Source: Auanema rhodensis
Taxonomy: Eukaryota > Animalia > Nematoda
Length of the DNA stretch: 64,000 nucleotides
Direction: 5' to 3'
Assembly (NCBI GenBank): GCA_964057225.1
Contig: OZ059897.1
Coordinates: 9,114,001-9,178,000 of the forward strand
Part shown: positions 10,076-54,259 of the stretch, in pieces
Layout of the letters: each line of letters starts with the position of its first letter
Position numbering within the stretch: the first letter of the stretch is position 1
Translations under genes and position numbers: made by a program
Notes under the pieces: generated by a model
Databases searched by the model: none
The model's input: only the letters and a program-made list of their open reading frames with translations
What the model was told of the DNA's origin: nothing

Positions 10076-11080
10076 GGCTTCAGTAGTAGTAAAGAAAGAA
10101 TGAGTAAAAGAAAATGGATCAGAGGCATTAATAGTATGATGACGTTCAAGAGCTTTAACTCACATGATAGTCAAACCATTTAAAGCACAAACAGCTAGCC
10201 TAACAGACAGCAACGACTTCCATTCCACAACATGATAGCCTTAAGGCTATGTGAGTGTATGGATGTTTGTGTGTGGTATCTCTGCTCTTCTTCTTCATTA
10301 CCCCTCCGGTTTCAAGATAAATATCTCGTCCGATAACGTACTGGAGTCGAAAAAAGAAAAAACTTTCGAAGAATAATGCTGAATCTCCTCGAAAATCTTT
10401 TGATTTTTTTTCTTCAAATAAATTTCAATTTCATTCATTTCTGCTCTCGTTTTTCTGGCTTTTCATCATTACATGTGGTAGCATCAGCTGCCAAGTTTTC
10501 ATGAGGTGAAAAGATAAGAGAAGACAGGCGTAAAAGATGAAAATGTTCTTTCAGGATATTCTTAACTCTCTAAAGCATAGGAGAGCCAAGTCTACCACAA
10601 TTTTTTGGAAGGAAATCACGAAAATAATCAGAAATATGTAATCAAAACGACGGAGATAGAAAAAAGTTGCATTAAAAAATGGAAGGAAGCGTAGTAGAAT
10701 CAATAAAAAAATTACTTAAATATATATATGTGTATGTGTGTGTGTGTGGTGTCTGTCTGTGTGGAGTCCAAAGAAAAATAAATAAGTAGAATAATAAGCT
10801 TTTGATATACTATATAGATATAGTTAACCATAAATAGTCTAATACTGCTTGTAAAGCAGCTATCGTTTGATGAAATAATGATTTTGAAAATACACGCGCA
10901 AGACACTAGTTTACACGCCAAATGCACACAATAAATCACAGACACACTAACTATATGAATATTATATATAATTCAAACAAAAAGACATAATTAATGCGAA
11001 ATTTTAAATTTTAAAATGAAACCTGCGTTCAAGAAAAGCGATGACGTACAATAATAAAGTTCAAGAAGTTCATGACTTAC

Positions 11081-11278
11081 CCGTGATCGTTCGATGCTAT
11101 GGAGCTGGCCCGACTGACTGGTCTCAGTACCTCGCGATCGTCGGCCGTTGGTCGGTACAGGAAGGATTCACGTCTCGCATGTACGGTGTGTGGCTGTTGC
11201 TGGAGCATCTGCTGATGCTGCGACGGCACCAGATGACCGGCTCCAATCGGCGAGGCTGACGACGAGTGCTGCTCCGAG
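11081..11278 (-). CDS. pde-4: pde-4 common UCR1 exon, reached through an internal splice acceptor
   Basis: TTGTTCAG|C acceptor at 11280-11279 inside the proximal exon gives a 198-nt phase 2-2 exon (SEQHSS...RRESFLY...NDHG) compatible with all upstream phase-2 donors. Confidence 0.7.
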
Positions 11279-11769
11279 CTGAACAACGGATGGACTCGCA
11301 AGCTATGCGTGGCTGAGCCGCTGCTAGTGCAGCTCGTGGAACGGGAACAACCCAATGCTGATGCGTTCGTCGCAGATGACGCTGTAGGACCAGGCGGAAC
11401 TGCTGACGACTTTGTTAAGGTGGTCAACAAGCCGCCTGGTTTTTTCATGTGCTTAGCAGCGCCAATCGACGACGACGCAGGCAATGGTTTGGTGTGAGCA
11501 ACAGTAGAAGGAATAGAAGTAGTTGGTTGATTAGTGTTAGTACAATTTTCAGATGAATCACAAGTTGGAGGACAATTGCTGCTGGGAGTGTTAGTATTCG
11601 TGGCGGCCGCTGCAGCCGTGGACCGTCTGAATAGATTGTGCAAATGCAGCTCACGCCGCAGGCCGGAAAAGCCGAATCCGGAACTGCTAGTGGATACCGG
11701 ATGATGTTGACCCGAAGACGAGCCAGACCCGGTACCAGCAGCTGCACCGCCGTTGCGCCGGCGCGCCAT
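11081..11769 (-). CDS. pde-4: cAMP-specific phosphodiesterase 4, proximal first coding exon (N-terminus plus UCR1 PKA site); the gene continues left of this exon
   Basis: ATG at 11769 begins MARRRNGG...GFGFSGLRRELHLHNLFR...VHARRESFLYR...LRPVSRASSIASNDHG, closely matching the recalled C. elegans PDE-4 N-terminus (GFGFSSLRRELHLHNFFR; HARRESFLYR; RPVSRASSIASNEHG). Phase-2 donor GG|GTAAGT at 11080. GC-rich exon. The expected next exon (HGDDLIVTPFAQ) was not seen in 1-11080. Confidence 0.93.
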
Positions 11770-12860
11770 CTGAAGCTTCTGCCCCTCTATGCCATGGGGT
11801 GCGGCTGTCAGTTGACGGCCCGCGGAGTGTGGGGGGAGTGGAGAGGCCAGCCTCAAACCCTTTCTTTCTCTCTCTCTTCACTTTCTGCTCTCTTGGGCCC
11901 AGTAGCTTTGGTTTGAAGCACTGAAGCTGATGGAGACGCAGGGAAGACACTACTTGTCTGGTTCTCGTTACGCCTTCTCCATAGTCTCCGGGATTTGGTC
12001 GTTTTCTCTTTTCTCTATCAACCCTTCCTCCTCTTTCCCTCTGTTTCCTCTTCTTTTTAACACTGTCTACCCTACTATTTTTTCTTGCATCTCAATTTCG
12101 CATTCATCCTCTCGGGTTTTCTCTTTGTACGCCTCTTTCTTTCTCCTCCCCCTTCTTTCTCTCTTTCTTTCTATTATTCTCTCCCTGTTTTGATTTACTC
12201 TCTTTATCTTTTCCTCCCTTTTAGTTACAGAAAATTTCATAACTATTTCCTAGTTCAGCTCAAAATTCTTTCTCTCTTAACACACACACACACCTTCCAT
12301 TTTTCATATTTTCAAGTTCTCATATACGCTTTCATTCATTTGTTTAGGCAATAATTACCATAGTATTCGATCATAATCGTCCCCTATGTACCAGTAATCA
12401 ACGTTTCATACTCTCAATACTCAATATGAGAATCTTTCAATTCACCAGACACTCATATCAGTTTTTTCTTAATCAGTTAACTGTAACCAAAAATATTTTG
12501 TTTGAAGCACAATCTTATTAATTTAAATGTTTAAAACAAGTCCTTAACTTAGATGTTCTAATTTAACAGAAAGAAGTATCAATATCCTAGCTATTCATCA
12601 TCTATTTTTTCAAAAAATACAGTTAAAAAATTCTATTTAATCATCATATAGCTAATAATATTTGAAATTCAAAAAAAACAAAACAAATAAAATCGCTATA
12701 TTTGTATTTTTGTTATTTTTCTGTCTATTTCAGAATACTCAAGAGGTTAATATTGTGGATTTTCGATTTTTTGTTTTGTTGTGAATTCTTTAATGCAATA
12801 AGGGATTAAAGCAGGACAAGACGGATTTGAAAAGACGTAACTACTACTACAACGACTTAC

Positions 12861-39100: not shown

Positions 39101-40207
39101 AAAGCGAGAGAGAGAGAGAGAGGAAAGGGGAAAAGAAATAACGTTGAACACTAGTAAGATTGAGCTTTGAAATGGAAAATGAAGATGAGAAGAAAACGAA
39201 AACGAGAGATAAAGGGAAATAAAAAAGGAGCAAAATAGGTTGAACCGCCGATAAAGAACTAAAAGTTGGATAAAACAGAGGAAAGAAGCACAACCGTCCG
39301 GATTATCAAATTTCAAAAACGAAAATGACGCAAGAAAACGTGAACAACATGAAAAAATTTGTTCAAATGAGATAATACGTGAAGATGAGTCACGTATGAT
39401 GTAACCTGATTGTAAATATGCTAATTCGAATAAACTTTTATGATTGTTATCGTCGGTTCATTTGTTTGTTGAACTAGTTCATAAACAGCGAATAACGAAC
39501 AACAACAGGAGTGTGGTGAAAGCAGTAGCATTTACAAAGCAACATGCTCATCGTCCTCGTGTTCTTCAATCTTGAGTTGTCGTTTATAATGAGATTCTTC
39601 GTGATTTCTATGCATCAGAATATGTACCTGACAATCTTTCTATATGTATTCGTTACTTACATACATGCATCTCTCTTTTGCTTCTGGCTCTTTTACCCAA
39701 ATTGAACCGATAATTATCAGATAGCTAGCAATTGTAGTTGAATGCGAAAAAGAAAATAATAGGAATGCGACATTAGCTTTGAATATAAAATCAAAAACGA
39801 AATAGGAATACTATATATACATAGTATAATGCATATTGTATAGTTTATAGTTAAACAACTCTTTATATAACAATTAGAAGAACTTATAATGTACTTACAT
39901 TGGCTATTCTTTCATTATATATGACACATCTCTTGATGTGCTTTCGTTTTTCATGAAAACAAAAACCATTCTTGTCATCCATCATAATCTGAGATTCAGA
40001 ATATGTCCTCATTCTGTCTCATAAGCCATCTCTGCCTAGCTATTTTCCATCAAATATTTCTCGAAAAGCCAAAGCATAATGTTGAAACATGTTCATAAAT
40101 AGGATATTTCTCGTTTTAGGAATTATGATAATATACATAAATGCGTAATTTTAATATAATGTTATTACCTCATTATCATTATCTATAGTTTTCTTTCTCC
40201 ATTCTAC

Positions 40208-40228
40208 CTCTCTCTTTCTCTCTCTCTA

Positions 40229-40282
<54 letters not shown>

Positions 40283-40290
40283 TCTCTCTC
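40208..40290. repeat. (CT)n microsatellite at the left edge of the mobile-element island
   Basis: Visible. Confidence 0.9.
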
Positions 40291-40493
40291 AAGGTAGTAT
40301 ATAAAATGTTGTTACTAGACCACCTTTTTGCCCAATCTTCAATGTCTACACTTTTTGGTCATTTTTCAGGCTTTATTTTACCAAAAATGTGTTTACTTCG
40401 AACAAAAACATAACATGCTTGAAAAAACCACTTTTTGGACCATTTTGCTCATTTCACAATTTTTGATCATTTCAAACGATTTTAAGGTAATAA

Positions 40494-40720
40494 ATGACAA
40501 AATTGAGAAAAGAGCTTGAAGCTCTAACAAACTTCGAACTCTTAGATTAGTAGACACATTAGAAATAAAAAATTTCCGTGAAATATTTATAAGAGACCCT
40601 TTGCCACCACAAGGAATTAAAGAAAAAGAAGTCGGAATTGTAAATTTAGATTCTTCAAATAATCAAGAAACTCACTGGTGTTATTCCAAAAAGAAAGATA
40701 ACATTTATTACCATAAATAA
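40494..40720 (+). pseudogene. Adenain-like (Polinton PRO) cysteine protease fragment
   Basis: MTKLRKELEALTNFELLD / frameshift / VDTLEIKNFREIFIRDPLPPQGIKEKEVGIVNLDSSNNQETHWCY matches the Polinton protease pattern L.NF....NFRGVF.RD.LP....E.GIVNLD......THW. Truncated after the catalytic His region. Confidence 0.8.
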
Positions 40721-40765
40721 TTATATAGCGAACAAGAGAATCCCATAATAAACGTACAAGAACAT

Positions 40766-41480
40766 TCATTGTTTAACAAGCTTGAAGTTCTTATTGCGCC
40801 AGTCGACGATGATTGATAGCTCCAAATGTTGCATTGCATCCGCGCCAAGGATGTTGACTTCTGCGAAATGGGCTTTGGAGACTTCACATTCGATCTCAGT
40901 CGTGTGATCCTGAACATTTTAAATTACTCATAAAACTCCAAACAAAAGAGAAAACAAACCTGGACGGCCACATCGAAGCAAGAATGAGTTACATTGCCTT
41001 AACCATAGTGACTTTTCAGCGACTTGACGCTAAGGCAGGTGAAGGGCAAACCCGTATCCACCAAGAACAAGATAAATACGGAGTTCGGCTTGCCTGGATG
41101 AGGAACCAAAAGATCATGGCTGTGGAATTTCGCTTACCGGCGCCTGAAAATTAGAGGGACCATGTATCGAAGGTTATTGCCGTGAACCGTCCTCATTGCG
41201 GGAAAAGCGGAAGAAGGAAAAGTTCCGGAGCTGAGGTGTTTAATACTTTTGCTGAGCCCACTCTGAAGAACAAAGCTTTTCAAAAATTTTATTAGATGCA
41301 ATAGTAAAAATTCATCCTACCTCAACAAGTTCTTCATTGTTAATATCCGAGACTAAAACATCAAATTCATCGTATGGTAGAGCGAGCTTGTGCCAAAACT
41401 CATCTGACGACAAACTTTAATAAAAGAAATATCAATTTAGAAACACATAAATGTATTCCTACCTTGTTGTGTTCACTCAT
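40766..41480 (-). pseudogene. Five-exon retropepsin-like (DTG) aspartic-protease-family gene, probably pseudogenised, located inside the Maverick remnant
   Basis: Exons: 41480-41463 (MSEHNK); about 41416-41321 (LSSDEFW...YDEFDVLVSDINNEELVE); 41262-41138 (...HGNNLRYMVPLIF); 41093-40960 (KPNSVFILFLVDTGLPFTCLSVKSL...FDVAVQ, one in-frame TAA); 40909-40766 (DHTTEIECEVSKAHFAEVNILGADAMQHLELSIIVDWRNKNFKLVKQ*). GT-AG introns of 44-58 nt. FLVDTG and NILG motifs are retropepsin hallmarks. One phase mismatch and a weak exon-2 acceptor. Confidence 0.75.
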
Positions 41481-41598
41481 GCTGACCAACTAATCCTCGA
41501 ATAGAGAGAGAATGTGATGCAGGCAGTCTCTCGTCTTCTTCTGAAACTCTGCTCAAAAAGTAACCTAAACAACTTCTAAAATAGATCATTTAAACTCG

Positions 41599-43430
41599 AT
41601 GTTAAGAGATGATCTTTGTAAAGAAGTCATCAGTATTCTTGATATCCTGAGTAACAATATTAAAAGTCAACAAATTCTCAATTCTCAAGAGCTAAAAGAA
41701 ATGAAAAAGCAAGATCTTTTAACATTTTTAAAAAATCATTTGCAAGTTCAAAAAGCTAAGCTAATTGATCTCAAGGATGTTTTTCCTTTCGAAGATCTCA
41801 TTTTTCAGTGATTATAAAGAAACTAAGAAAGGAGTCGTAAGAACAACAACTTTTCGAAACAAAGGAAAAGATATAAATTTCGAAAAATATTTTGACATTT
41901 TTGATAAAAGAGTGTTTCGTATATATACGAAAAAATAAGTAATTAATCAGTAAACTAAGTAAAAATTAAGGAAATTGGTTTTAAATAGAAAATGAGTAAA
42001 TTCATTTTAAAGTTTATTTCTGCTGTGAGCGGACGTATACAGTTAACGTCATATTTACGTGAACTGATGTATGCCGAATGCTTCACTTTAAATCAGTTCA
42101 CCATTGTGTTCTCATAGCGATCAGTCGCATTTATTAATATTGTATTGCCATTTATTATAAAGTAAATAAATCATATTCTGTATCTTTTTGGAATAAAGAG
42201 GAATAGACTATTTTAAGATCATCATTGCAAAAATTTTGTACTCAATGACATCCGGAGTGATACAACAGTCAAAATATATTTGAAGCTAGAGTTCAAACAA
42301 ATGACGAACTCCATAGAAGAAAAATTTGCTGTAAGATCGGAAACTAAAGAACTGTGCATTGGTGAAGATCGAGAAAAGTGATATCAACATGCATGTCAAG
42401 AATTACGAATGAATATGGATAATTTACAAAAAAAATTCTAAAATTTGTATACATTCTCCTGACAGTAATAAATTGAAATATGATAGCCAAATCGAAGATT
42501 GTGGTAGAAACAAGCCCTGCATGATCCATCTAATTCACGGACCGCTGATGTTGGTTTTTTTCCACAATTTGAAAGTTTATGATTCACATCTGATTGTTGG
42601 TTGTCATTATAGTACTGAAAATTTGAAACAAAAAGGAATTGAATTGGAAAAAAATTCTAGTAATACAGAAAAAGGTATTAGTTTCAGTTATAAGTTACCT
42701 TCTGACAAGGAGGGTGAAAAATATTTTTACAAAAAAGAAATTAGATTTCTTGATTCTTTCTCTTTCATGTCTTCCTCATTGGATAAACTAGTTGAAAACT
42801 TGAGTGATAAAAATCTTCGCCTCAGTAGAAATTATTAGATCTCCCAACAATTCCAATTGATGAGAAAGAAAGGTATCTATCCATATGAATATATAGATTC
42901 TTTCAAAAGATTTGATAAAGCAAAACTCCCAAATAGAGACAAATTTGATGACAAGCTCAATAATAAAAAATGTAAAAGAAAGGATTATCGGTATGTAGTA
43001 AAAGTTTGGAAAAAAATGAAGAGTACTAGTTTAGAAGGCTACACCAGAATTTATATGATCAACGATGTTCTTCGTATAGCAGATGTTTTTGAAAATTTTA
43101 AAAAATTGAGTCTAACTGTTTATGAACTCGATCCTTGTTGGTACTTTACTTCTCCAAGATTATCTTAGGACGTCTTGTAAAAAAAGACTAAAATACAATT
43201 AACAGTTCTCTATGATATAGAGGTCAATCTCGTAATTGAGAAAGGCATTCGAAACGGGATAGTTAATGCTGTGAAAAGATATGCCAAAGTTAACAATAAG
43301 TATATTAAAGGTTTCGGTTTATCAATACTTTCAAATTATCTAATGTACTTGAATGCTAATAATTTAAATGATTGGGCTATATGTCAATTGCTACCTACTG
43401 GAGACTTTCAATTGGAAAATGATTACTTTA
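41599..43430 (+). pseudogene. Protein-primed family B DNA polymerase (Maverick/Polinton pPolB), fragmented and 3'-truncated
   Basis: Motifs FFHNLKVYDSHLI (Exo II), IRFLDSFSFMSSSLDKLV, KGIYPYEY, YMINDV...ADVFENF (Exo III), LDPCWYFTSP, RYAKVNNKY and YLNANNL.DWA.CQ.LPTGDF (Pol motif A) run across ORFs 42473-42838, 42857-43168 and 43271 onward, with stops and frameshifts. The N-terminal part (41.6-42.45 kb) is less certain. Confidence 0.9.
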
Positions 43431-43544
43431 GAAATACAGCACTTATCTTGAAAACTACCTCTCTTTATCAAATAAGGCATTACATACACAATTTCTTAAC
43501 ATTAGGATACTCTAAATCTACTTCGAAAATATATTCTCTTCTAG

Positions 43545-43546
<2 letters not shown>

Positions 43547-43632
<86 letters not shown>
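43547..43632. repeat. (CT)n microsatellite abutting LTR A
   Basis: Visible. Confidence 0.9.
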
Positions 43633-43637
<5 letters not shown>

Positions 43638-44050
43638 AATAAATTTCTTTGCTTTATTCGTAGTCGGTGAGATTCGTAGAATTTACTGTATCGTTGACGT
43701 TCTCTATACCGTTGGTTGGTAGTTACGTTTGTGCGTCTCTTCTCGTCTATGTCAGAAGAGTGATGTGTCTCCGAGTCTGACGGAATCTTAAGAAGTCTGC
43801 AGTCTATCTAACTGCCACGAGCCTCTGAGTCTCTTTATCGACTAGAATTCGTCGAGTCGTGTTCCGTAACAACGATCTTGGACTAACGGATCTCTTATAA
43901 GAAGCCGCCCTTTACTAATACGTGAGTATCAGAACACACAGAAAAGATCACCCCAACTACTTCGCCATTCGGATTTTATATACGTTTACTTGGCGGTAGT
44001 AGTTTGCAAATTTGGTTTCTTTTTACTTGATCTCGTTCCTAAGATCGACA
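43633..44050 (-). mobile_element. LTR A of a Bel/Pao retrotransposon (418 bp)
   Basis: Terminal inverted TGTCGA...TCGACA. On the minus strand it is preceded by CCGCCCCCAG (Bel-type pre-LTR tract) and has AATAAA near its 3' end. Its 3' portion is homologous to LTRs B and C. Abuts (CT)n. Confidence 0.8.
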
Positions 44051-44170
44051 CTGGGGGCGGACAAAAGATAAAGCTGAAAAAGGTAAGATTTTTACTAAAT
44101 GATTATAGAAAAACAAACAAAAACAAATAACTAAAAAACAAAACCCACAAACACAAAGAAACAACAAGAT

Positions 44171-44718
44171 CTATTGGCCGTCTTCCACCTTTCTTTTGAG
44201 CCTATTTCTTCTCATCATGCTTTCAAGTCCGGCTACATGACCAGGGCAGCAGCATAAAGCGTGAGCCCATACTCCAGAATTGCAATGTCTGCACGGCGTT
44301 GGTTTCCGACATTGCCCTGTCTCGTGGTTGGTTTTTTAGCATTATAAACACCTTTTTGTTTCATGAGCGAAGTGGAGCCTCTGGGAGATTGTATTGACTA
44401 TTCTGCATTGATCCGCTGGATGACATTCTTCGCAGAATGGGCAGAATCTTCTTTCCTCCTCCTTCTCTAAATACGTCCATAGCCTCTTGTCGTTTCTTCT
44501 TATCGTGTGAATAATATCTTCGAGCATTCTTTTGATTTGCTTCATCTCGATTTGATCAACGTTCACGTCCTTTTGCTTTGTTTCTACGCGGTGCTTGTGG
44601 TTAACTGCTACCGTCGGACCTTTCGATATCTTTGGTATCTTTGTTATCTTCGGGAATTTGTCATAGTGTTGTCTAGATCATCTAGAATGGCATCGTAATC
44701 CAGATCGATTGACTCCAT
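44171..44718 (-). pseudogene. Bel/Pao 3' accessory ORF with Cys/His zinc knuckles (copy 1, frameshifted, with stops)
   Basis: MESIDLDYDAILDDLD...CPFCEECHPADQC...RCL*C*KTNHETGQC...CRHCNSG...HALCCCPGH. Lies between the pol end and the LTR. Confidence 0.75.
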
Positions 44719-44800
44719 TCTTAAATAGTTATTTTTAACAAAGTTGAACAAGAAAAAACTGTACAAGATAACAAACAATCGCATCTATGAACTGCTGATA

Positions 44801-44982
44801 CTATTGTTGTATCTCTAATGGTACGATGGTATGTACGGATCTCCGAAGGATCCTCCCGCCAGAATGTAAAAGATCTACCGTGCGTGGAGATCGTTCATCC
44901 GGATGCATTTTCATGATCTTGGCTAAGTGCCATCTTGTTTTATCAGTTTTTTGATCAGTGCAAAAAACTATTTCTCCTATTC
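44801..44982 (-). pseudogene. Bel/Pao pol C-terminus (integrase-adjacent DUF5641-like domain), left arm
   Basis: Reverse-complement homologue of 45014-45194, ending ...PLEIQQ*. Confidence 0.7.
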
Positions 44983-45194
44983 GCGGACTTTGACTGGACC
45001 CTTACGGTTCCAAGAATAGGAGATATAGTTTTTTGCACAGATCAAAAAACTGATAGAACAAGATGGCACTTAGCCCAGATCATGAAAATGCACCCCGATG
45101 AGCAATCTCCACGCGCGGTAGATCTACTACATTCTGCCGGGAGGTCCTTCGGAGATCCATTCATACGATCATTCCATTAGAGATACAGCAATAG
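44983..45194 (+). pseudogene. Bel/Pao pol C-terminus (DUF5641-like), right arm
   Basis: PRIGDIVFCTDQKTDRTRWHLAQIMKMHPDEQSPRAVDLLHSAG / frameshift / RRSIHTIIPLEIQQ* fits the P..GD.V...R..W.L.RI...RS...L.PLE pattern that ends Bel/Pao Pol. Confidence 0.75.
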
Positions 45195-45259
45195 GATTAG
45201 AATGAAGATGAGTTCATTGTATTGTACCATTACTGTTCTAAACCTAATTATGTTAAGAA

Positions 45260-45676
45260 ATGGAATCAATAGATCTTGACTACGATGCCATATTAGACGA
45301 CCTGGATCAAACAATCATGAATACCACCAACCTAAGAATTCAAGTTCCCACAAAGCCTATTCCGAAGGTGTCAAAGATCCCGAAAATTCATCAAAACCAG
45401 GCGACAAGGACTAATCAAACTAACCGAGAAGATTACAAACGACGGGAAGTACCAAATGACAACTTGGAAATGAAACAGATTAATAGAATGCTAGAAGACA
45501 TCATCCACACAATCCGAAGAAACGATAAGAAATTGTGGGCATATCTCGAGAAAGAGGAGGAGAGAAGATATTGCCCATTCTGCGAAGAAGCCCATCAAGC
45601 TGACCAATGCCGGATAGTAAATACTATCTCGCAGGGACTGCACAGGGTCATTCTCTATAGATCTCTGTTGTCTTAA
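45260..45676 (+). pseudogene. Bel/Pao 3' accessory zinc-knuckle ORF (copy 2, diverged, internally deleted)
   Basis: 138-aa ORF MESIDLDYDAILDDLD...MLEDIIHTIRRNDK...CPFCEEAHQADQC. Similarity to copy 1 is lost after NTISQ, so the later knuckles are deleted. Confidence 0.75.
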
Positions 45677-45737
45677 CGTGTTACATTCTTTCATATATTT
45701 TCATATTGTTTGTCGTTAAAAAAACTTATTTGTTGTG

Positions 45738-46172
45738 TGTCGTTGTTGATTCCGAAGTAACAGACATCGTAATCAGCAAGAACCCGAAGGCGTAGGAATA
45801 GTTCACGCACTTGTCTAGGAACAGTTAGAAAGCCTGTTTTCCTAGAGACTAATCGCAAAGGCCGTTAGTAGGTTCATAAGGGCGGATCTGTATCAGAGGT
45901 CCGTTTGTCCGAGATCGTTGTGGTAGAACACGAACTCGACGAGCTCTAGTCAAGAAAGATTATTCTTTCCGAGGCTCGTGGCAGTTAGAAAGACTGCAGA
46001 CACCCTAAGATTCCGTCAGACACGGAGACACATCACTCTTTTTCCATAAATAAAAAGAGTAGTGCGAACACACTCGCCAACAATCGAGATACTCGACATA
46101 GTGAACGTACAAGATACAGTAAATTCTACGTATCACATAAATTACGAATAAACAAAAGTAACTTATTCGACA
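45738..46172 (+). mobile_element. LTR B (435 bp)
   Basis: TGTCG...TCGACA termini, AATAAA near the end, direct repeat of 46835-47269, followed by ACA(CT)n. Confidence 0.8.
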
Positions 46173-46238
46173 ACACTCTCTCTCACTCTCTCTCTCTCTC
46201 TCTCTCTATTCTGTCAAATAAAAAACAAACATAAAAAC

Positions 46239-46821
46239 ATCGAAAGGTCCGACGGTAGCAGTTAACCACAAGCATCGCGTAGAAACAAAGCAAAAGGACG
46301 TGAACGTTGATCAAATCGAGATGAAACAAATCAAAAGAATGCTCGAAGATATTATTCACACGATAAGAAGAAACGACAAGAGGCTATGGACGTATTTAGA
46401 GAAGGAGGAGGAAAGAAGATTCTGCCCATTCTGCGAAGAATGTCATCCAGCGGATCAATGCAGAATAGTCAATACAATCTCCCAGAGGCTCCACTTCGCT
46501 CATGAAACAAAAAGGTGTTTATAATGCTAAAAAACCAACCACGAGACAGGGCAATGTCGGAAACCAACGCCGTGCAGACATTGTAATTCTGGAGTGTGGG
46601 CTCACGCCTTATGCTGCTGCCCGGGTCATGTAGCCGGACTTGAAAGCATGATGAGAAGAAATAAGCTCAAAAGAAAGATGGAAGATGGCCAATAGATCTT
46701 GTTGTTTTTTTGTGTTTGTGGTTTTTTTGGTTTTTAGTTATTAGTTTTTGTTTGTTTTGTTTGTTTTTCTATACTCGTTAGTAAAAATCTTACCTTTTTT
46801 AGCTTTATCTTTTTTCCGCCC
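46239..46821 (+). repeat. Near-identical inverted copy of 44055-44627 (zinc-knuckle ORF fragment plus 3' UTR)
   Basis: ORF 46300-46524 encodes the same 74 aa as 44342-44566 on the opposite strand, and both share the TAA-TGC-TAA stops. Confidence 0.9.
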
Positions 46822-46834
46822 TTTTTTTTTTCCG

Positions 46835-47269
46835 TGTCTTTGTTGATTCCGAAATATTAAACATCGTAATCAGCAAGAACCCGAGGGCGTTGGAATAGAT
46901 CACGCACTCGTCAAGGAACAGTTAGAAAGCCTGTCTTCCTTGAGACTAATCGCAAAGGCCGTTAGTAGGTTCATAAGGGCGGATCTGTATCAGAGGTCCG
47001 TTTGTCCGAGATCGTTGTGGTAGAACACGAACTCGACGAGCTCTAGTCAAGAAAGATTATTCTTTCCGAGGCTCGTGGCAGTTAGAAAGACTGCAGACAC
47101 CCTAAGATTCCGTCAGACACGGAGACACAACACTCTTTTAACACAGATAAAAAGAGTAGTGCGAATACATTCGCCAACAATCGAGATTCTCGACATCGAG
47201 AACGTCTAAGATACAGTAAACTCTACGTATCACATAGATTACGAATAACGAGAAGTAACTTATTCGACA
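46835..47269 (+). mobile_element. LTR C (435 bp)
   Basis: Same length as LTR B and highly similar with scattered substitutions. Ends TTATTCGACA, followed by ACA(CT)n...TATTCTGTCAA as after LTR B. Confidence 0.8.
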
Positions 47270-47272
47270 ACA

Positions 47273-47303
<31 letters not shown>

Positions 47304-47308
47304 TCTCA

Positions 47309-47380
<72 letters not shown>
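47273..47380. repeat. (CT)n microsatellite abutting LTR C
   Basis: Visible. Confidence 0.9.
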
Positions 47381-47382
<2 letters not shown>

Positions 47383-48187
47383 ATTCTGTCAATAAAAAAC
47401 AAACAAAAAAACAAAATGTTTTATAAACGTTTCAAACGAATATATACATATACATATTTAATAATAATACAATCATCTATAAAACATTAAATTAATTTAC
47501 AATAATAATTATTATAAAATTATATTTATGCATGTCGTTGATAATCATTGACAGTAGTGAAAACGATATTATTATAATAAATGTTTGCTATATCACATTT
47601 CAGAAAAAGAAAAAGTTTGAAGATGAAGGACAATATTTCCAAAAAAAAAAAGAAAAAAAAAGAAAAAAATTGAAATTCATAAAGCAAGACAACAGACATG
47701 TAATACACTAATTTAGTGAAAAAAGACTTTAAAATCATGTTTTGATCATCATGAATTGCTTCAATATTTCATTTTTTCTTTTTTTTAAAATCATATCGTT
47801 TAACTACATGCGTTTTCTATAAAGTTGTTTTTATATGAGAAAAAAAAGGGAAGAAAATTTCAAAAAATAGAAATCTCGTCAAATCCAAAAAAAAACTTTT
47901 TTGAAAATAGTAAAAAAATAAAAAGAAGAAGCCTATACGTGTAGGCAAAATACATACGTAGATGAGTAACCGTGACAGCAATACTTTTTGTGAATGAGAA
48001 GATGTACACGAATAAGTAGAATACTGTAGAATCTCGTCGGAACTATATTTGGAATATAAAAAATATTTGAAGAATAGAAATATGAATACGATGAATACGA
48101 AGATATACAGGTAAAACAATACAAAATCGCTGAGCAAGGAAAGGAGTTGGTTTTGTGTTTTGATGATCCTGGATAGTGAAGAAGAGT

Positions 48188-51100
48188 TTAGACATCACTG
48201 AAATGAAAAGATCGTTAACTATATGGTTTTTTTGTGTTTATTAATTATATATGTACATATATTGTTATTAAAGTTTTGGAATGATTCAAAACTCAAAATT
48301 CTTCAAAAAAAAAACCATTTTTTCTAATTTGAATTCTCAAAAAAAAATAGTTAAAATGACATTGTGCTACAGTGAAATTCTTGTAAAAACATGGACAAAA
48401 CTGAATTATGTGTTTGAAGTTATAATTATTAAAATTCTAATATATTATATAAAATAATTATACAAATAAAAATGATTTCATAACTTCAAAGGACGAATCA
48501 GGTAGAAGAACATATAGGATGTGCTATGACACGTCACCAAGAGCTTTGGTTCATATGTTTGGCCATGTTGTTACAAGAATTTGGCATTTGTTAAGTATAT
48601 ATATTTAATTTTTTTATATGTTGAAACTCATTTTATCAGTAATTAATTGGTAAAATAAGGAAATGGATTAGCAATATTCTCAATTGAAGCTATTTATTTT
48701 TCAATCGAAATATATGTAACTAGTAGGTAGTGTAAGCTTGGGTGAGATTATGACATAAATAAGATTACATACATAGAGTATAATAGTTTTTTTGAAGACA
48801 TATTAGACAGGCATATGGATATTTTACACATGTAACATGTTTATGAATGAGCATATGATGTCATATATGACTTGCGTCTTCTGATTTCACGTCATAATTC
48901 ACTTTGAAGCTTGCTCATTCGAACTTAATTGAAACTTAAATGGCGAATAGCTTGATCCACAATCATTTTCCTTATTCAACTCAATTCATTAACTGATCAA
49001 ATGAGATATCAGCATAATAAGATGAGCAAGTTAACTGACGATGTCTCCAGCTGATTCTCAAGTATGAACTTGAGCAGTTCCTGCTGCTTACAGCTGGCCG
49101 TTGATGCTGTCTGGCAGATTATCGGCGGAGGTGTTGGTGGTGGCGGAGCATCCGGTAGTGGTGGAGCCGGCGGTGATCGATTTTCCGAGCATATAGACTG
49201 AAGCCAAAAGCTGATAAGGATGATTGAAGAATAATGATTATTAGATTTGAAAGCAGATGATTGATTAGGAGGGGAAAGAAAAGGAAAACTGAGAAGAAGA
49301 TGTAGAAGATGAATGGGAAAAGTCATAGAAATCAAAGATGCTTTTAGAAAGAAGGTTATTAGATTGAATCTGAAAAAGTTAACCAAAAATCTGTAACTTG
49401 TATCGAACTGTGCAGACAAATTCTATTGGACAATTAAGACAAAAAACTTGAATTTTGCTTGAATTTTGTTAAAAAATTCGTGTAATTTGTGAATTATAAA
49501 AGTTAATTTGATAAAAAAATGTGAAAAATAAGTTTGAAAAAAGAAAACAAAAATAAAAGAAAAACACAAAAAAACCATAACCAAACGAAATGTCTAGTTA
49601 GTCTAATTTGAAGATATTAGAAAACCCAAAATTATGAATTAATAATTAAAAAAAAGAAAAAGAAAAAGGACAGAAAACTATATATTAGAACTAGAAAATT
49701 ATTAGTACCTGATCTGATTCTTCGGGTAAATCAAGACTGATGTTAATAGTAGATTCGCTCGGACTTTCATTGACAGCTATAGTAGAGATATGGGTCCTAT
49801 TCATCTAAAGTTAAGCCAAGCAACGTAAGAGCACAAATAGAAACTTGTTTGGTTAAAATTAAACTTCTTTTTCCTTTTTTGTTGTAAAAATAATGAAAAC
49901 AATCTCTAACACTACCCCAACAGATTAGAAAGAAAGTCACAAAAAACATGCAAAGATTCACTATAGTTAAGGATATTTTGTGTAGAAATTTCTTCAAAAA
50001 ATATTGGAAAAATTTAAGAAAATACGAAGAAATTTTGAATTCGAGAGAATAAACTATGTTATACTTACATCTAATGGACAGCCATCAGAAGCAGAGGAGA
50101 TTCCTGATGTTGAGCTTCCGAAAGACTCTGATGAGGCGGCTACAGAGTGAATAGATGTCTGCGAAGCTTGAGAATGACGTCGATTATGCTGAATCTAAAT
50201 GATGATATACGCTACGTTCAACTTCGAACAAATACTCACTTCTCCAAGTTTTGCTGTGATTCGTCGGCTGCTGGCACCCATGGCAGAACTAACGTGATTC
50301 CATGAGAATCTTTTCAAGATTCCGCCCTGAACTACAGCAGCACCCTTTGGCTTCATATCAATAGCATCAGCTGTGTGATAGCGTTTTTCGAATCGTCGTC
50401 CTTGAAGTGGAGGATCTTCGTCTGCGGTGACAAGCAGAGTCGGGGAGCTATGGTTATCCTCTAGACCGTTAACAGGAGTGTTAATTTCTCTACAAAAGAC
50501 AAGTATAAAGACAGAAAGCTCAAAAGCCTGTTACCTGGTATCACCACGTCGAGATGGTGATGGGCTTCGTGAAACACTTTTGCCTCCCTCGATTTCAGGT
50601 CCTGAAGAATTCGACCTAGATCGTGGCCTATCTTCGGTAAAAGTGACAGTTTGAGCTTCAGCTCCAAGAGCCATATGAAGATCAACTGAGCTTCTACTAG
50701 TGCTTAATGGATTAGCAATACAGCTAGCCACACTAAGTTTATGAAGAGGTGGTAGTCGCTGAGGTGAATCCAAACGATCGTTATAACGATTTAATTGTTC
50801 AGTAGATGATACTGTTCCCATTCTATGCATATCTGAAACCAAATGATATAGGTTCATTAATATATGAAATGATCATACGATTCATATGCGCGTGAGCATG
50901 AGCAATAGCAACTGTCTGTGAGTCCATGCTACTGCTCTTACGATGAACTATTGACATGTTTGCCAGATTCTGAGCAACACCAGTGAATGGTCTGAAAAAA
51001 GATAATAAAATACTATTCATATCAATAGATATGATACATACCCTCGAGTAGCATCATCAATAGGGCTATCATGAGGAAGAGTATAAGCTCTGTGCAAATG

Positions 51101-51265
51101 CCGGAACTCATCTCGAGCCATTCCCAACAGTTCTGTCCATTTTCGAGTTTCTTCCACACCACCCGTATGCATCATGTAAAGCTGAGAGCATGTATGGAAC
51201 ACATTCATATGTAACAAGTAGAAACCAGCTGAAACAATGATATGTTAAATCATAAGTTCATGAAT

Positions 51266-51317
<52 letters not shown>

Positions 51318-54259
51318 TAAATCTAGAGAAAAAGAGAGAGCAAGAGTTTTCAAAAAAAAAGAATTGTATTCAATTAAAATATCTTTTTGTATTTCCTTTT
51401 AACTGAATTTAATTATAAAAATATTTCATTTCTATTAATTTGTTTTTGAGAATTATTAAGATATTTGAAAAGTGAACTTACTTCCATCTGGAAATGGATG
51501 ACATATCAGACTTGTAAGATGCATTGGAGGTCTGGCTATACGAAGACGATCAGCCTTCTTACGGCAAATCAAAAACATATCAGTGAAAACCAAACAATAC
51601 ATTTCCATCTAAAAAGATTTATTGAAAAACAGTTGAGAAAGAGATTGATATATACCTTTGGTCCTTGTTTTCCTTCACGCACTTTCAATTCACCTCGATG
51701 GAATAGACGACGATAAACTTGAACATTGGGAGGAAAGTATGGCATTGGATGAACTAAATCTAAACAACATCGTTGACCATAGAAAATCTGTAAAAAATGG
51801 ATTATGATATAAGCTGTATTAATGATAGAAACCTTCTCAAATTCATCTTGATCAACACAATCATAACTATCAATTTGGGATCGAATTTCTTCCAATTGAT
51901 GTCGGAGATCATTGTTATTCATCTCGAGATTAAGCATATGTGTTGCTTCTTCAACTTGATCAATTAAACTTTGAACAAGCTCTTTCTCTTGTGCTTCAGT
52001 TGATGATCGAAGAATAGCCTAAAAAGACAAATGTTATAAAGAATTCCTCATAAACAAAACAGATGATTTACCTTTAATAGCAAGCTATATCTGGTTAATC
52101 TTTGCATGGGCATTGTTAAAGTATCCGACAATTTCTGTCGTCTCATGCTATCTTGAGACTCAGACCACTGAAATAAGACAATTTTTGAATTCGAAGACTG
52201 TTTTGAAGGCAGCTTACTGAGACAAATTCAGCAAATAGATGAGTATCTTTTTGCTTTTTCTGAAGATACAAAAGAGAATCATTGTGAGATGAAGTGAATG
52301 CTGTATAGTAGTGAGCCCATGTCATAATGGATGAGAACATTGGTTTCAGATACGTCAGATTCAATGGACATCCCTTAGATCGCGATTGTTCAAGCATGGG
52401 CAATATATTCTTTTCCCAAAATCTTCTATGTTTATCAAATAATTCATCATAATTAAGAAAAACTTTTTCCACAAGAATATCTCTGAAATAGAAAATATTA
52501 ATTAAACGATTAGAACATTGCAAATTGTACTTTAAGAACCCGCTTCGTTGTAATTCTTTTAAATAATCTTTCAAATCGGCCATGTTCTTCAATACCTGGA
52601 AGAGATTTACAGCTTATTTAAGTTGCACGAATGATATTCGTTTACCTGAATATATCTACATTCTGTTGTGACTAGTTCCCATATAGCTTCTTGTTGTTCA
52701 ATACATCTACGAGATAAATCTTGATGATTTGATACAATCATCTTCCAATGTTCTTCTAATTCTAAAAACGGAAGACACGTATTTGTGTTTTCTTTCATTG
52801 TAGCCAGCCGATTGATCAGATCATTCTTTTCCTGAAAAAAAGCAAATAGAATATATGAATTTTTGAACATTATGTCTGATATACTTTGCCAAAAAACAAG
52901 CTGATACGACTTGATGCAAGTGAGCGAGCACGTCGAGTGCCACCATCATCTGGATACATATCGGAGCATGATGCTCCATCATCCAACATATTAATTTCTC
53001 TGAAACAAATAAACAAATTGATATCAGATATTTTCATATATCTAGAATATAAAATTAAAAATATGTAAACTATAATCTATAAAGCAAATATCTACATACA
53101 TGCAAGACATGTATGTATGAAAAGTCATGTGCTCTTGTTCTCAGACATTCGCTACATGATCTCACACAAATTCTTAGATCAAAAACTGCAGTCAGAACAG
53201 ATTATAATTCCGTATCTTGTATTATTTGAACAAAAATTTATTTTAATAGATTGATCATGTGAATGTTTGATGAAAGTAACTTACTTTGTTGAACTATCAT
53301 TACTTCTTCCTTCAGAAAAGTCGTCACTACCATTCAGCTTATTCTCAGAATGCTGTCGTGATTTGGATAGCTGAAGATAGTAAAGTTATGAAAAGAAACA
53401 AGAGAAATGTTTGAAAAATAAATAAATAATCAATAGAAATGCTTTTTTTCTTTGTAGAAATCAAAAAAATATTTATGCTCATCATGCTCATCATGCTCAT
53501 GAACATTTTTCTTAGCATTACATATTTACTTTTCAAAAATTTACTTCTTTTCCTAAAAAGCCAAAACGTACTAAACTTAACTTACCAATCGACTGTTAAC
53601 AAAGGAGGATTTACGACTGATAGCTTCTGCACTCATTTTTCGGCTTGGACGGTCTCCCGGCGACTCATCCATTGAGTGCGTGTTACGACTATGATAGCCC
53701 ACTCGCATCACGCTACGTCCTGAAAATACAAGAAAGTTAGAAAAAAAGAAGTTGTTTGAAAAAACAAAGGCAAATAGTTGTAATTATTTTGGATACTTTT
53801 CAATTTTTTTTAAGATTTCAAGAGAGGGAGGGACAGAGATAGAGAGAATGCTCCAAATATCATTAGCTATATGTATGTCGTGTAGAACTCGAAGATGAGC
53901 TTAACAACATTTGCTCAGAAGAACAGCCATTTTTGAGCATTTTTCGTGTGGACATAGGAAAAGTGAATGTTTGGATGAAAATGAAGTTTAATATAATTAT
54001 ATAATTGAATACATGTGTGGGCGATAGACATGTTTGAATTTTCGAAGAAAGACAATTAAATAAAAATTAATAGAAACCAATTAAAATGGTAAATGTATAA
54101 GTACATAGCATATCGTATATAGTATCTATGCATTATATAGAATAAAGAGAGATATTCTATTTGAAAAGTTGACTTCAATCATAGCCATTTGATGAATTAA
54201 TATTATTTTTTATTATTATAATTATTATTTTATTAATTATATAGAAAATAGAAAATAAA

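Follow-up and report, generated by a model that had tools for sequence, protein, structure and literature searches.

A broken retropepsin-fold gene in Auanema rhodensis, a probable passenger of one decayed Maverick element

The stretch of Auanema rhodensis DNA analysed here, referred to as the window, is 64,000 nucleotides long (contig OZ059897.1, positions 9,114,001 to 9,178,000). It holds what is probably the dead copy of a spliced nematode gene of normal appearance, belonging to an undescribed multi-copy family with a retropepsin fold (clan AA). The gene appears to lie inside a Maverick/Polinton relic of about 3.2 kb, packed between an N-terminal protease fragment and a polymerase fragment. 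We infer that it entered the Maverick as genomic DNA and not via an RNA copy, and that it was the passenger of one Maverick copy, gene and block having decayed as a unit. To this joint reading, in which the copy is a dead pseudogene with no present function and the passenger of one decayed Maverick, we give a probability of about 0.6, for this single locus. One copy fits either order of events, that is, capture before the death of the element or insertion later into the dead relic. The features that enter into the argument are the following.

Positions 40149 to 40308, no strand: (CT)n microsatellite of repeat family D1, the left bound of the relic block.
Positions 40520 to 40717, plus strand: fragment similar to the N-terminal third of a cysteine protease of the adenain (Maverick) type, 66 aa, a weak assignment made via the relative P0078.
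Positions 40704 to 40709, minus strand: AATAAA, a possible polyadenylation signal about 60 nt past the stop codon, read from the sequence.
Positions 40766 to 41480, minus strand: broken five-exon gene of the retropepsin-fold family, from start to stop codon, placed by exon-piece alignments and a spliced alignment.
Positions 41541 to 41546, minus strand: TTTCAG, a possible acceptor for 3′ splicing or trans-splicing that precedes the start codon by 61 nt, read from the sequence.
Positions 42413 to 43480, plus strand: N-terminal part of a protein-primed family-B DNA polymerase of the Maverick type, ending at a (CT)n array.
Positions 43487 to 43660, no strand: (CT)n microsatellite of repeat family D1, the right bound of the block, with LTR-retroelement debris beyond.
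Positions 44133 to 44633 and 46233 to 46733: inverted repeat of 501 nt, 97% identical, in the retroelement debris.
Positions 44935 to 45177, plus strand: DUF5641 match in the retroelement debris.
Positions 50198 to 52945, minus strand: exons of a RhoGEF-domain host gene, the Pfam match over 52146–52613 having an E-value of 3.5e-5.

An earlier note on this DNA had proposed a five-exon gene on the minus strand that is missed by lists of open reading frames, and such a gene is recovered here. The minus strand yields four exon pieces free of stops, which, searched singly and not as one joined spliced protein, align in order with a family of nematode proteins from end to end. A protein-to-DNA spliced alignment, from which the score, the counts and the outer bounds (41480–40769) are taken, gives four GT-AG introns and therefore five exons, and in it the window gene covers residues 1–173/174 of five different relatives. 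The gaps that separate the exon pieces measure about 45–58 nt; GT-AG introns of 44–58 nt had been noted before. Identity summed over the exon pieces is 75% to a protein of Caenorhabditis sp. 36 and 73% to C. briggsae CBG15215, and the D-T-G and I-L-G motifs are both kept. Gene models of Diploscapter pachys, together with one open reading frame called from a sequencing run, run on into an intron where the window gene has its last one, so that this intron position is common to the relatives. The four exon pieces gave no match in Pfam because they are too short. A second copy of the gene was found neither by tblastn nor by blastn in the 64-kb window.

The signals around the gene carry little weight. 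The upstream TTTCAG that had been suggested as a trans-splice site is present, but the window shows no enrichment of this hexamer (70 observed versus 81 expected), which is thus no evidence by itself. The AATAAA downstream is a weak polyadenylation signal because such hexamers are common in AT-rich DNA. Within the approximately 174 codons, the spliced alignment counts one in-frame stop and two frameshift events, besides a few small in-frame gaps. The earlier note had reported one stop and a single phase mismatch.

The block around the gene runs from about 40310 to 43480, with a (CT)n array on either side. On the polymerase side, a single frame is held with 3 in-frame stops in 356 codons. Two adjacent pieces match Pfam DNA_pol_B_2 colinearly, at profile positions 12–73 and 74–180 of 468, with E-values of 0.0027 and 0.0005 that are both below the curated cut-off, and a PHROG DNA polymerase model also matches. 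On the other side, P0078, which is 75% identical to the protease-like fragment, has a sub-threshold match to Peptidase_C5 (E 0.069, profile positions 18–56 of 179). The fragment itself matches no protease in Pfam or among PDB sequences, where spurious leucine-rich-repeat matches were all that was returned, and a search against PHROGs gave nothing useful. At best, the fragment would represent the first third of an adenovirus-type protease gene, the rest of which is absent. The placement between a Maverick protease fragment and a protein-primed polymerase thus stands for the polymerase through colinear sub-threshold matches, and has weak backing for the protease through P0078. No Maverick terminal inverted repeats were found in 30–55 kb, where the long inverted repeats are retroelement debris and microsatellites, and no integrase, ATPase or capsid gene was seen in the stop-free stretches of the window. 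With these parts missing, the term Maverick relic rests on the sub-cut-off polymerase fragment and the very weak protease match. The window gene is oriented opposite to both flanking fragments, is separated from each by a very short spacer, and takes up the site at which the bulk of the protease gene would be expected.

Beyond the right bound, from 43660 to 47220, the DNA is GC-richer debris of a BEL/Pao-type LTR retroelement. A zinc-knuckle-like open reading frame occurs there in three copies, two of which are identical (44342–44566 on the minus strand and 46300–46524 on the plus strand). A third (CT)n array at 47222–47397 ends this retroelement block, and the three arrays enclose, in turn, the relic block and the retroelement debris. 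Either a single array was apparently split by insertions, or deletions seem to have come to an end within arrays of this kind.

The composition of the gene differs from that of its neighbours, as had been remarked before. The exon pieces have a GC content of 0.457 and a GC3 of 0.536, against about 0.29 and 0.20–0.28 for the flanks (0.294 and 0.263 in the polymerase-like pieces, 0.288 and 0.197 in the protease-like piece). The gene is compositionally foreign to its surroundings. Since the introns and a GC-rich codon make-up of its own have been retained, its entry as genomic DNA may be deduced. The RhoGEF host gene at 50–53 kb has a GC content of 0.367 and a GC3 of 0.290, the latter being far below that of the retropepsin-like gene. 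Elsewhere in the window, whose GC content is 0.32, a stop-free stretch of 266 codons at 11080–11877 on the minus strand reaches 0.57; it is of low complexity, rich in Ala, Gly, Ser and Arg, and gave no match in Pfam.

The relatives of the gene were collected with its last exon (47 aa), which was searched against 1.84 billion representative proteins. Twenty-four relatives were returned, mostly of 170–260 aa and always matched at their C-terminal end, and a further search with the closest full-length match and then with a family profile enlarged the family to 49 proteins. The family proteins are about 174 aa long and come from at least 17 nematode species and one fungal record. Within Caenorhabditis they occur in briggsae, nigoni, remanei, tropicalis, angaria, auriculariae and sp. 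36; other members are found in Diploscapter, Pristionchus, Mesorhabditis and Auanema, and also in Halicephalobus, Acrobeloides, Aphelenchoides, Ditylenchus and Panagrolaimus. The nearest relatives of the window gene are from Caenorhabditis and Diploscapter. Several species carry many copies, which lie on four large contigs in Caenorhabditis sp. 36 and mostly on tiny contigs in Halicephalobus. The family searches, whose reach is limited, returned no protein of C. elegans.

A few of the records call for comment. P0064, filed under the fungus Tuber indicum, is the sole match of the profile outside nematodes (36% identity, E 1e-11). The record may represent a fungal protein distantly related to the family, or else nematode sequence within the truffle assembly. 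P0001 and P0002, open reading frame calls from Logan/ENA, are the closest matches of the last exon. They run through introns and wrong frames and, where the gene has its stop codon, read W and continue, which suggests gene calling with TGA translated as Trp. They attest homologous DNA and not real proteins. By eye, P0012, P0017, P0018, P0019, P0020 and P0033 have basic N-terminal extensions resembling mitochondrial targeting sequences, and the subfamily of the window gene is without such an extension.

The family has no Pfam model, and the names of its members in databases are "hypothetical protein", with one "DUF1758 domain-containing". The literature yielded nothing on CBG15215 or on retropepsin-like nematode proteins. 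The family is undescribed, while its fold class and this kind of setting are already known and the window copy itself is ordinary.

Evidence for the fold comes from a relative. An AlphaFold model of C. briggsae CBG15215 (P0027), built from the family alignment, reaches a pLDDT of 89.5 and a pTM of 0.83. In a Foldseek search of the PDB with this model, all 50 matches listed are clan AA aspartic proteases, retropepsin-like ones foremost: the APRc protease of Rickettsia is best, followed by DDI1 protease domains, the proteases of HTLV-1 and RSV, and pepsin lobes. Against a library of viral structures, the matches are mostly protease-bearing retroviral or pararetroviral entries or aspartic proteases. 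The best match of the family profile among PDB sequences is FIV protease, over the span from D-T-G to I-L-G (E 0.034). Relatives match Pfam RVP, gag-asp_proteas and Asp_protease_2 below threshold, with best E-values of 0.0007–0.01, and none reaches the curated cut-off of the Pfam retropepsin models. The retropepsin-like motifs that had been read from the letters are borne out; a retropepsin fold is supported as a prediction for the family by the P0027 model and for the window copy by alignment. Ahead of the fold, the family has a conserved extension at the N-terminus, about 60 residues long. The relatives gave no Pfam match to a ubiquitin-like or UBA domain, and in the P0027 model the N-terminal part is one helix with no ubiquitin-like sheet.

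The catalytic motif is not uniformly retained. A canonical D-[TS]-G is present in 22 of 38 family members and in 4 of 9 within the subfamily of the window gene, while the L and G of the I-L-G-type motif are 100% conserved in the family and six other columns are 100% conserved across the nematode members in the motif census. Intact members that keep D-T/S-G are probably homodimeric aspartic endopeptidases, as retropepsins are, judging from sequence and model. In many others the motif is non-canonical, so that many are probably not enzymes, and about half of the members seem to have given up catalysis. Since the motif is lost in many members and residues elsewhere are invariant, the conserved role may be in binding or scaffolding rather than catalysis, and members without D-T/S-G probably keep such a predicted role. 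The suggestion that the family is toxin-like is unsupported: no more than 22 of 38 members have a canonical motif, and no partner gene is visible in the block.

One pair of relatives hints at movement between species. P0019 of C. auriculariae and P0071 of Pristionchus pacificus, from different nematode families, are identical at 203 of 209 positions (97%), whereas the next-best inter-genus pair among named species reaches 77%. Both lie on megabase contigs and both are without the catalytic Asp. The pair looks like the product of a recent horizontal transfer, with contamination as the alternative. C. auriculariae has a second such copy, which is fused to a thyroglobulin/WAP/lustrin gene model. 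In a neighbour-joining tree without support values, the subfamily of the window gene splits roughly by nematode clade, and old paralogues and losses could account for the rest of this tree. Fused gene models were found in three relatives, the partners being Hsp70/Hsp90, an aldehyde dehydrogenase and the thyroglobulin/WAP/lustrin protein, all ordinary host genes; none of the three is fused to a Maverick domain.

These observations bear on a broader proposal, in which the family is a regular third class of Maverick cargo that moves horizontally between distant nematode genera and the window copy is one decayed instance. Two cargo families of nematode Mavericks have been published, the WASP/wosp serine proteases and the KRMA kinases (Widen et al., bioRxiv 10.1101/2022.07.12.499685). 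Their slot is a GC-rich region of 2–5 kb from the left terminal repeat to the integrase, the cargo genes have introns and a higher GC content than the intronless genes of the element, and both families carry an N-terminal ubiquitin-like domain (bioRxiv 10.1101/2022.07.12.499685). For the serine-protease cargo, 47 of 235 are reported to have Maverick core genes close by. Maverick genes with 90–95% identity between genera, a diplogastrid included, are on record, and a literature search found no further cargo families. The embedding of the window gene between Maverick-type fragments, its introns and raised GC content, the patchy and multi-copy distribution with no C. elegans protein returned, the 97% pair, and the high identity of the recorded Maverick genes between genera all speak for regular cargo, and to this extent the earlier note's proposal of a Maverick cargo family is partly supported. 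Nevertheless, linkage to a Maverick is seen at a single relic, the gene lies outside the slot, the ubiquitin-like domain is lacking, the three fusions are to host genes, the motif is canonical in little more than half of the members, and the clade-wise split of the subfamily in the unsupported tree is what vertical descent would give. Such a general role for the family is possible, and we hold it to be doubtful.

Alternatively, a duplicate of host-gene DNA could have landed in a Maverick relic that was already dead, through segmental duplication or transposon capture and with no link to the Maverick. In support of this, the protease gene is truncated exactly at the gene cassette, which would be intolerable for an autonomous element; the position is not that of the cargo slot; and the surroundings are full of other element debris and microsatellites. 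However, the cassette is not framed by terminal repeats or target duplications from some other element, the matches found there being short, of low identity and chance-like. The gene and the polymerase piece have a similar density of breaks, and the spacers on either side of the gene are very short. A later arrival is considered unlikely, and carriage by the Maverick with joint decay remains the preferred reading.

It could also be argued that the gene is alive, its stop and frame problems arising from errors of sequencing or assembly or from a wrong splice model, and that a working member of the family is encoded. The breaks are few, D-T-G is retained, the start, stop and AATAAA signals are plausible, and identity to intact relatives is 73–75%. 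Yet there are three independent disruptions, seen with five different relatives as the guide, and the stop interrupts coding sequence that runs on in the relatives. In principle, the frameshift events could be assembly errors. The adjoining polymerase piece, however, holds one frame over its 356 codons, so indel-type assembly errors seem uncommon here and the breaks in the gene are taken as real. A live gene is accordingly improbable.

Very improbable, and rejected, is a remnant of the protease domain of an LTR retrotransposon such as the BEL/Pao debris 2 kb away: the relatives' weak matches to RVP, gag-asp_proteas and Asp_protease_2, the one DUF1758 name and the nearby DUF5641 point in that direction, but every Pfam match is below cut-off, the gene is a stand-alone one of five exons with its own start and stop, and the relatives, which at about 174 aa are complete in themselves, carry the N-terminal extension specific to the family and lack gag, reverse transcriptase or integrase parts.

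Taken on its own, the window copy is an ordinary pseudogene. Of wider interest, should the cargo link turn out to be general, would be the family, which is nematode-wide, multi-copy and undescribed and has a protease fold of viral type. Maverick cargo families on record number only two. If the cargo reading were true, the 97% pair would be a recent transfer and the window would show a decayed vehicle with its load; if the cargo link were general, a wider set of host genes would be ferried between animal species by virus-like transposons. For horizontal transfer, the 97% pair, whose members belong to two nematode families, would then be a ready case to test by computation alone.

Comparison with known systems places the gene near several of them. 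Like published Maverick cargo, it bears introns, is GC-richer than the genes of the element and stands among Maverick-type gene fragments, and its family is patchy and multi-copy with one near-identical pair across distant genera. Unlike published cargo, it is flanked by a protease fragment on one side and the 5′ part of the polymerase on the other, outside the region from terminal repeat to integrase. The family differs from both cargo classes, as had been claimed, in having another fold and no N-terminal ubiquitin-like domain. The best structural match of the family model is APRc of Rickettsia conorii (PDB 5c9b/5c9f; E 3e-4, TM 0.63 by target, about 120–130 aligned columns), which likewise has a single lobe of the retropepsin type with one D-T-G. 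APRc differs in being bacterial, in its 14–17% identity and in having no counterpart of the extension of about 60 residues, and it is not a relative at the level of sequence. The DDI1/Ddi1 domain (PDB 3s8i, 4rgh, 7efy), matched by the model with Foldseek probabilities of 0.99–1.00, shares a cellular eukaryotic retropepsin fold and a helix after the active-site loop. Unlike DDI1, the family is without ubiquitin-like and UBA domains, is multi-copy and nematode apart from one fungal record, and has often lost the catalytic motif. The proteases of FIV (2hah), HTLV-1 and RSV and the Pfam models RVP and gag-asp_proteas have the same order of motifs, D-T-G and then I-L-G. In contrast to these retroviral and LTR-retrotransposon proteases, to which the E-values are marginal, the family gene stands alone, is spliced and lies outside any polyprotein.
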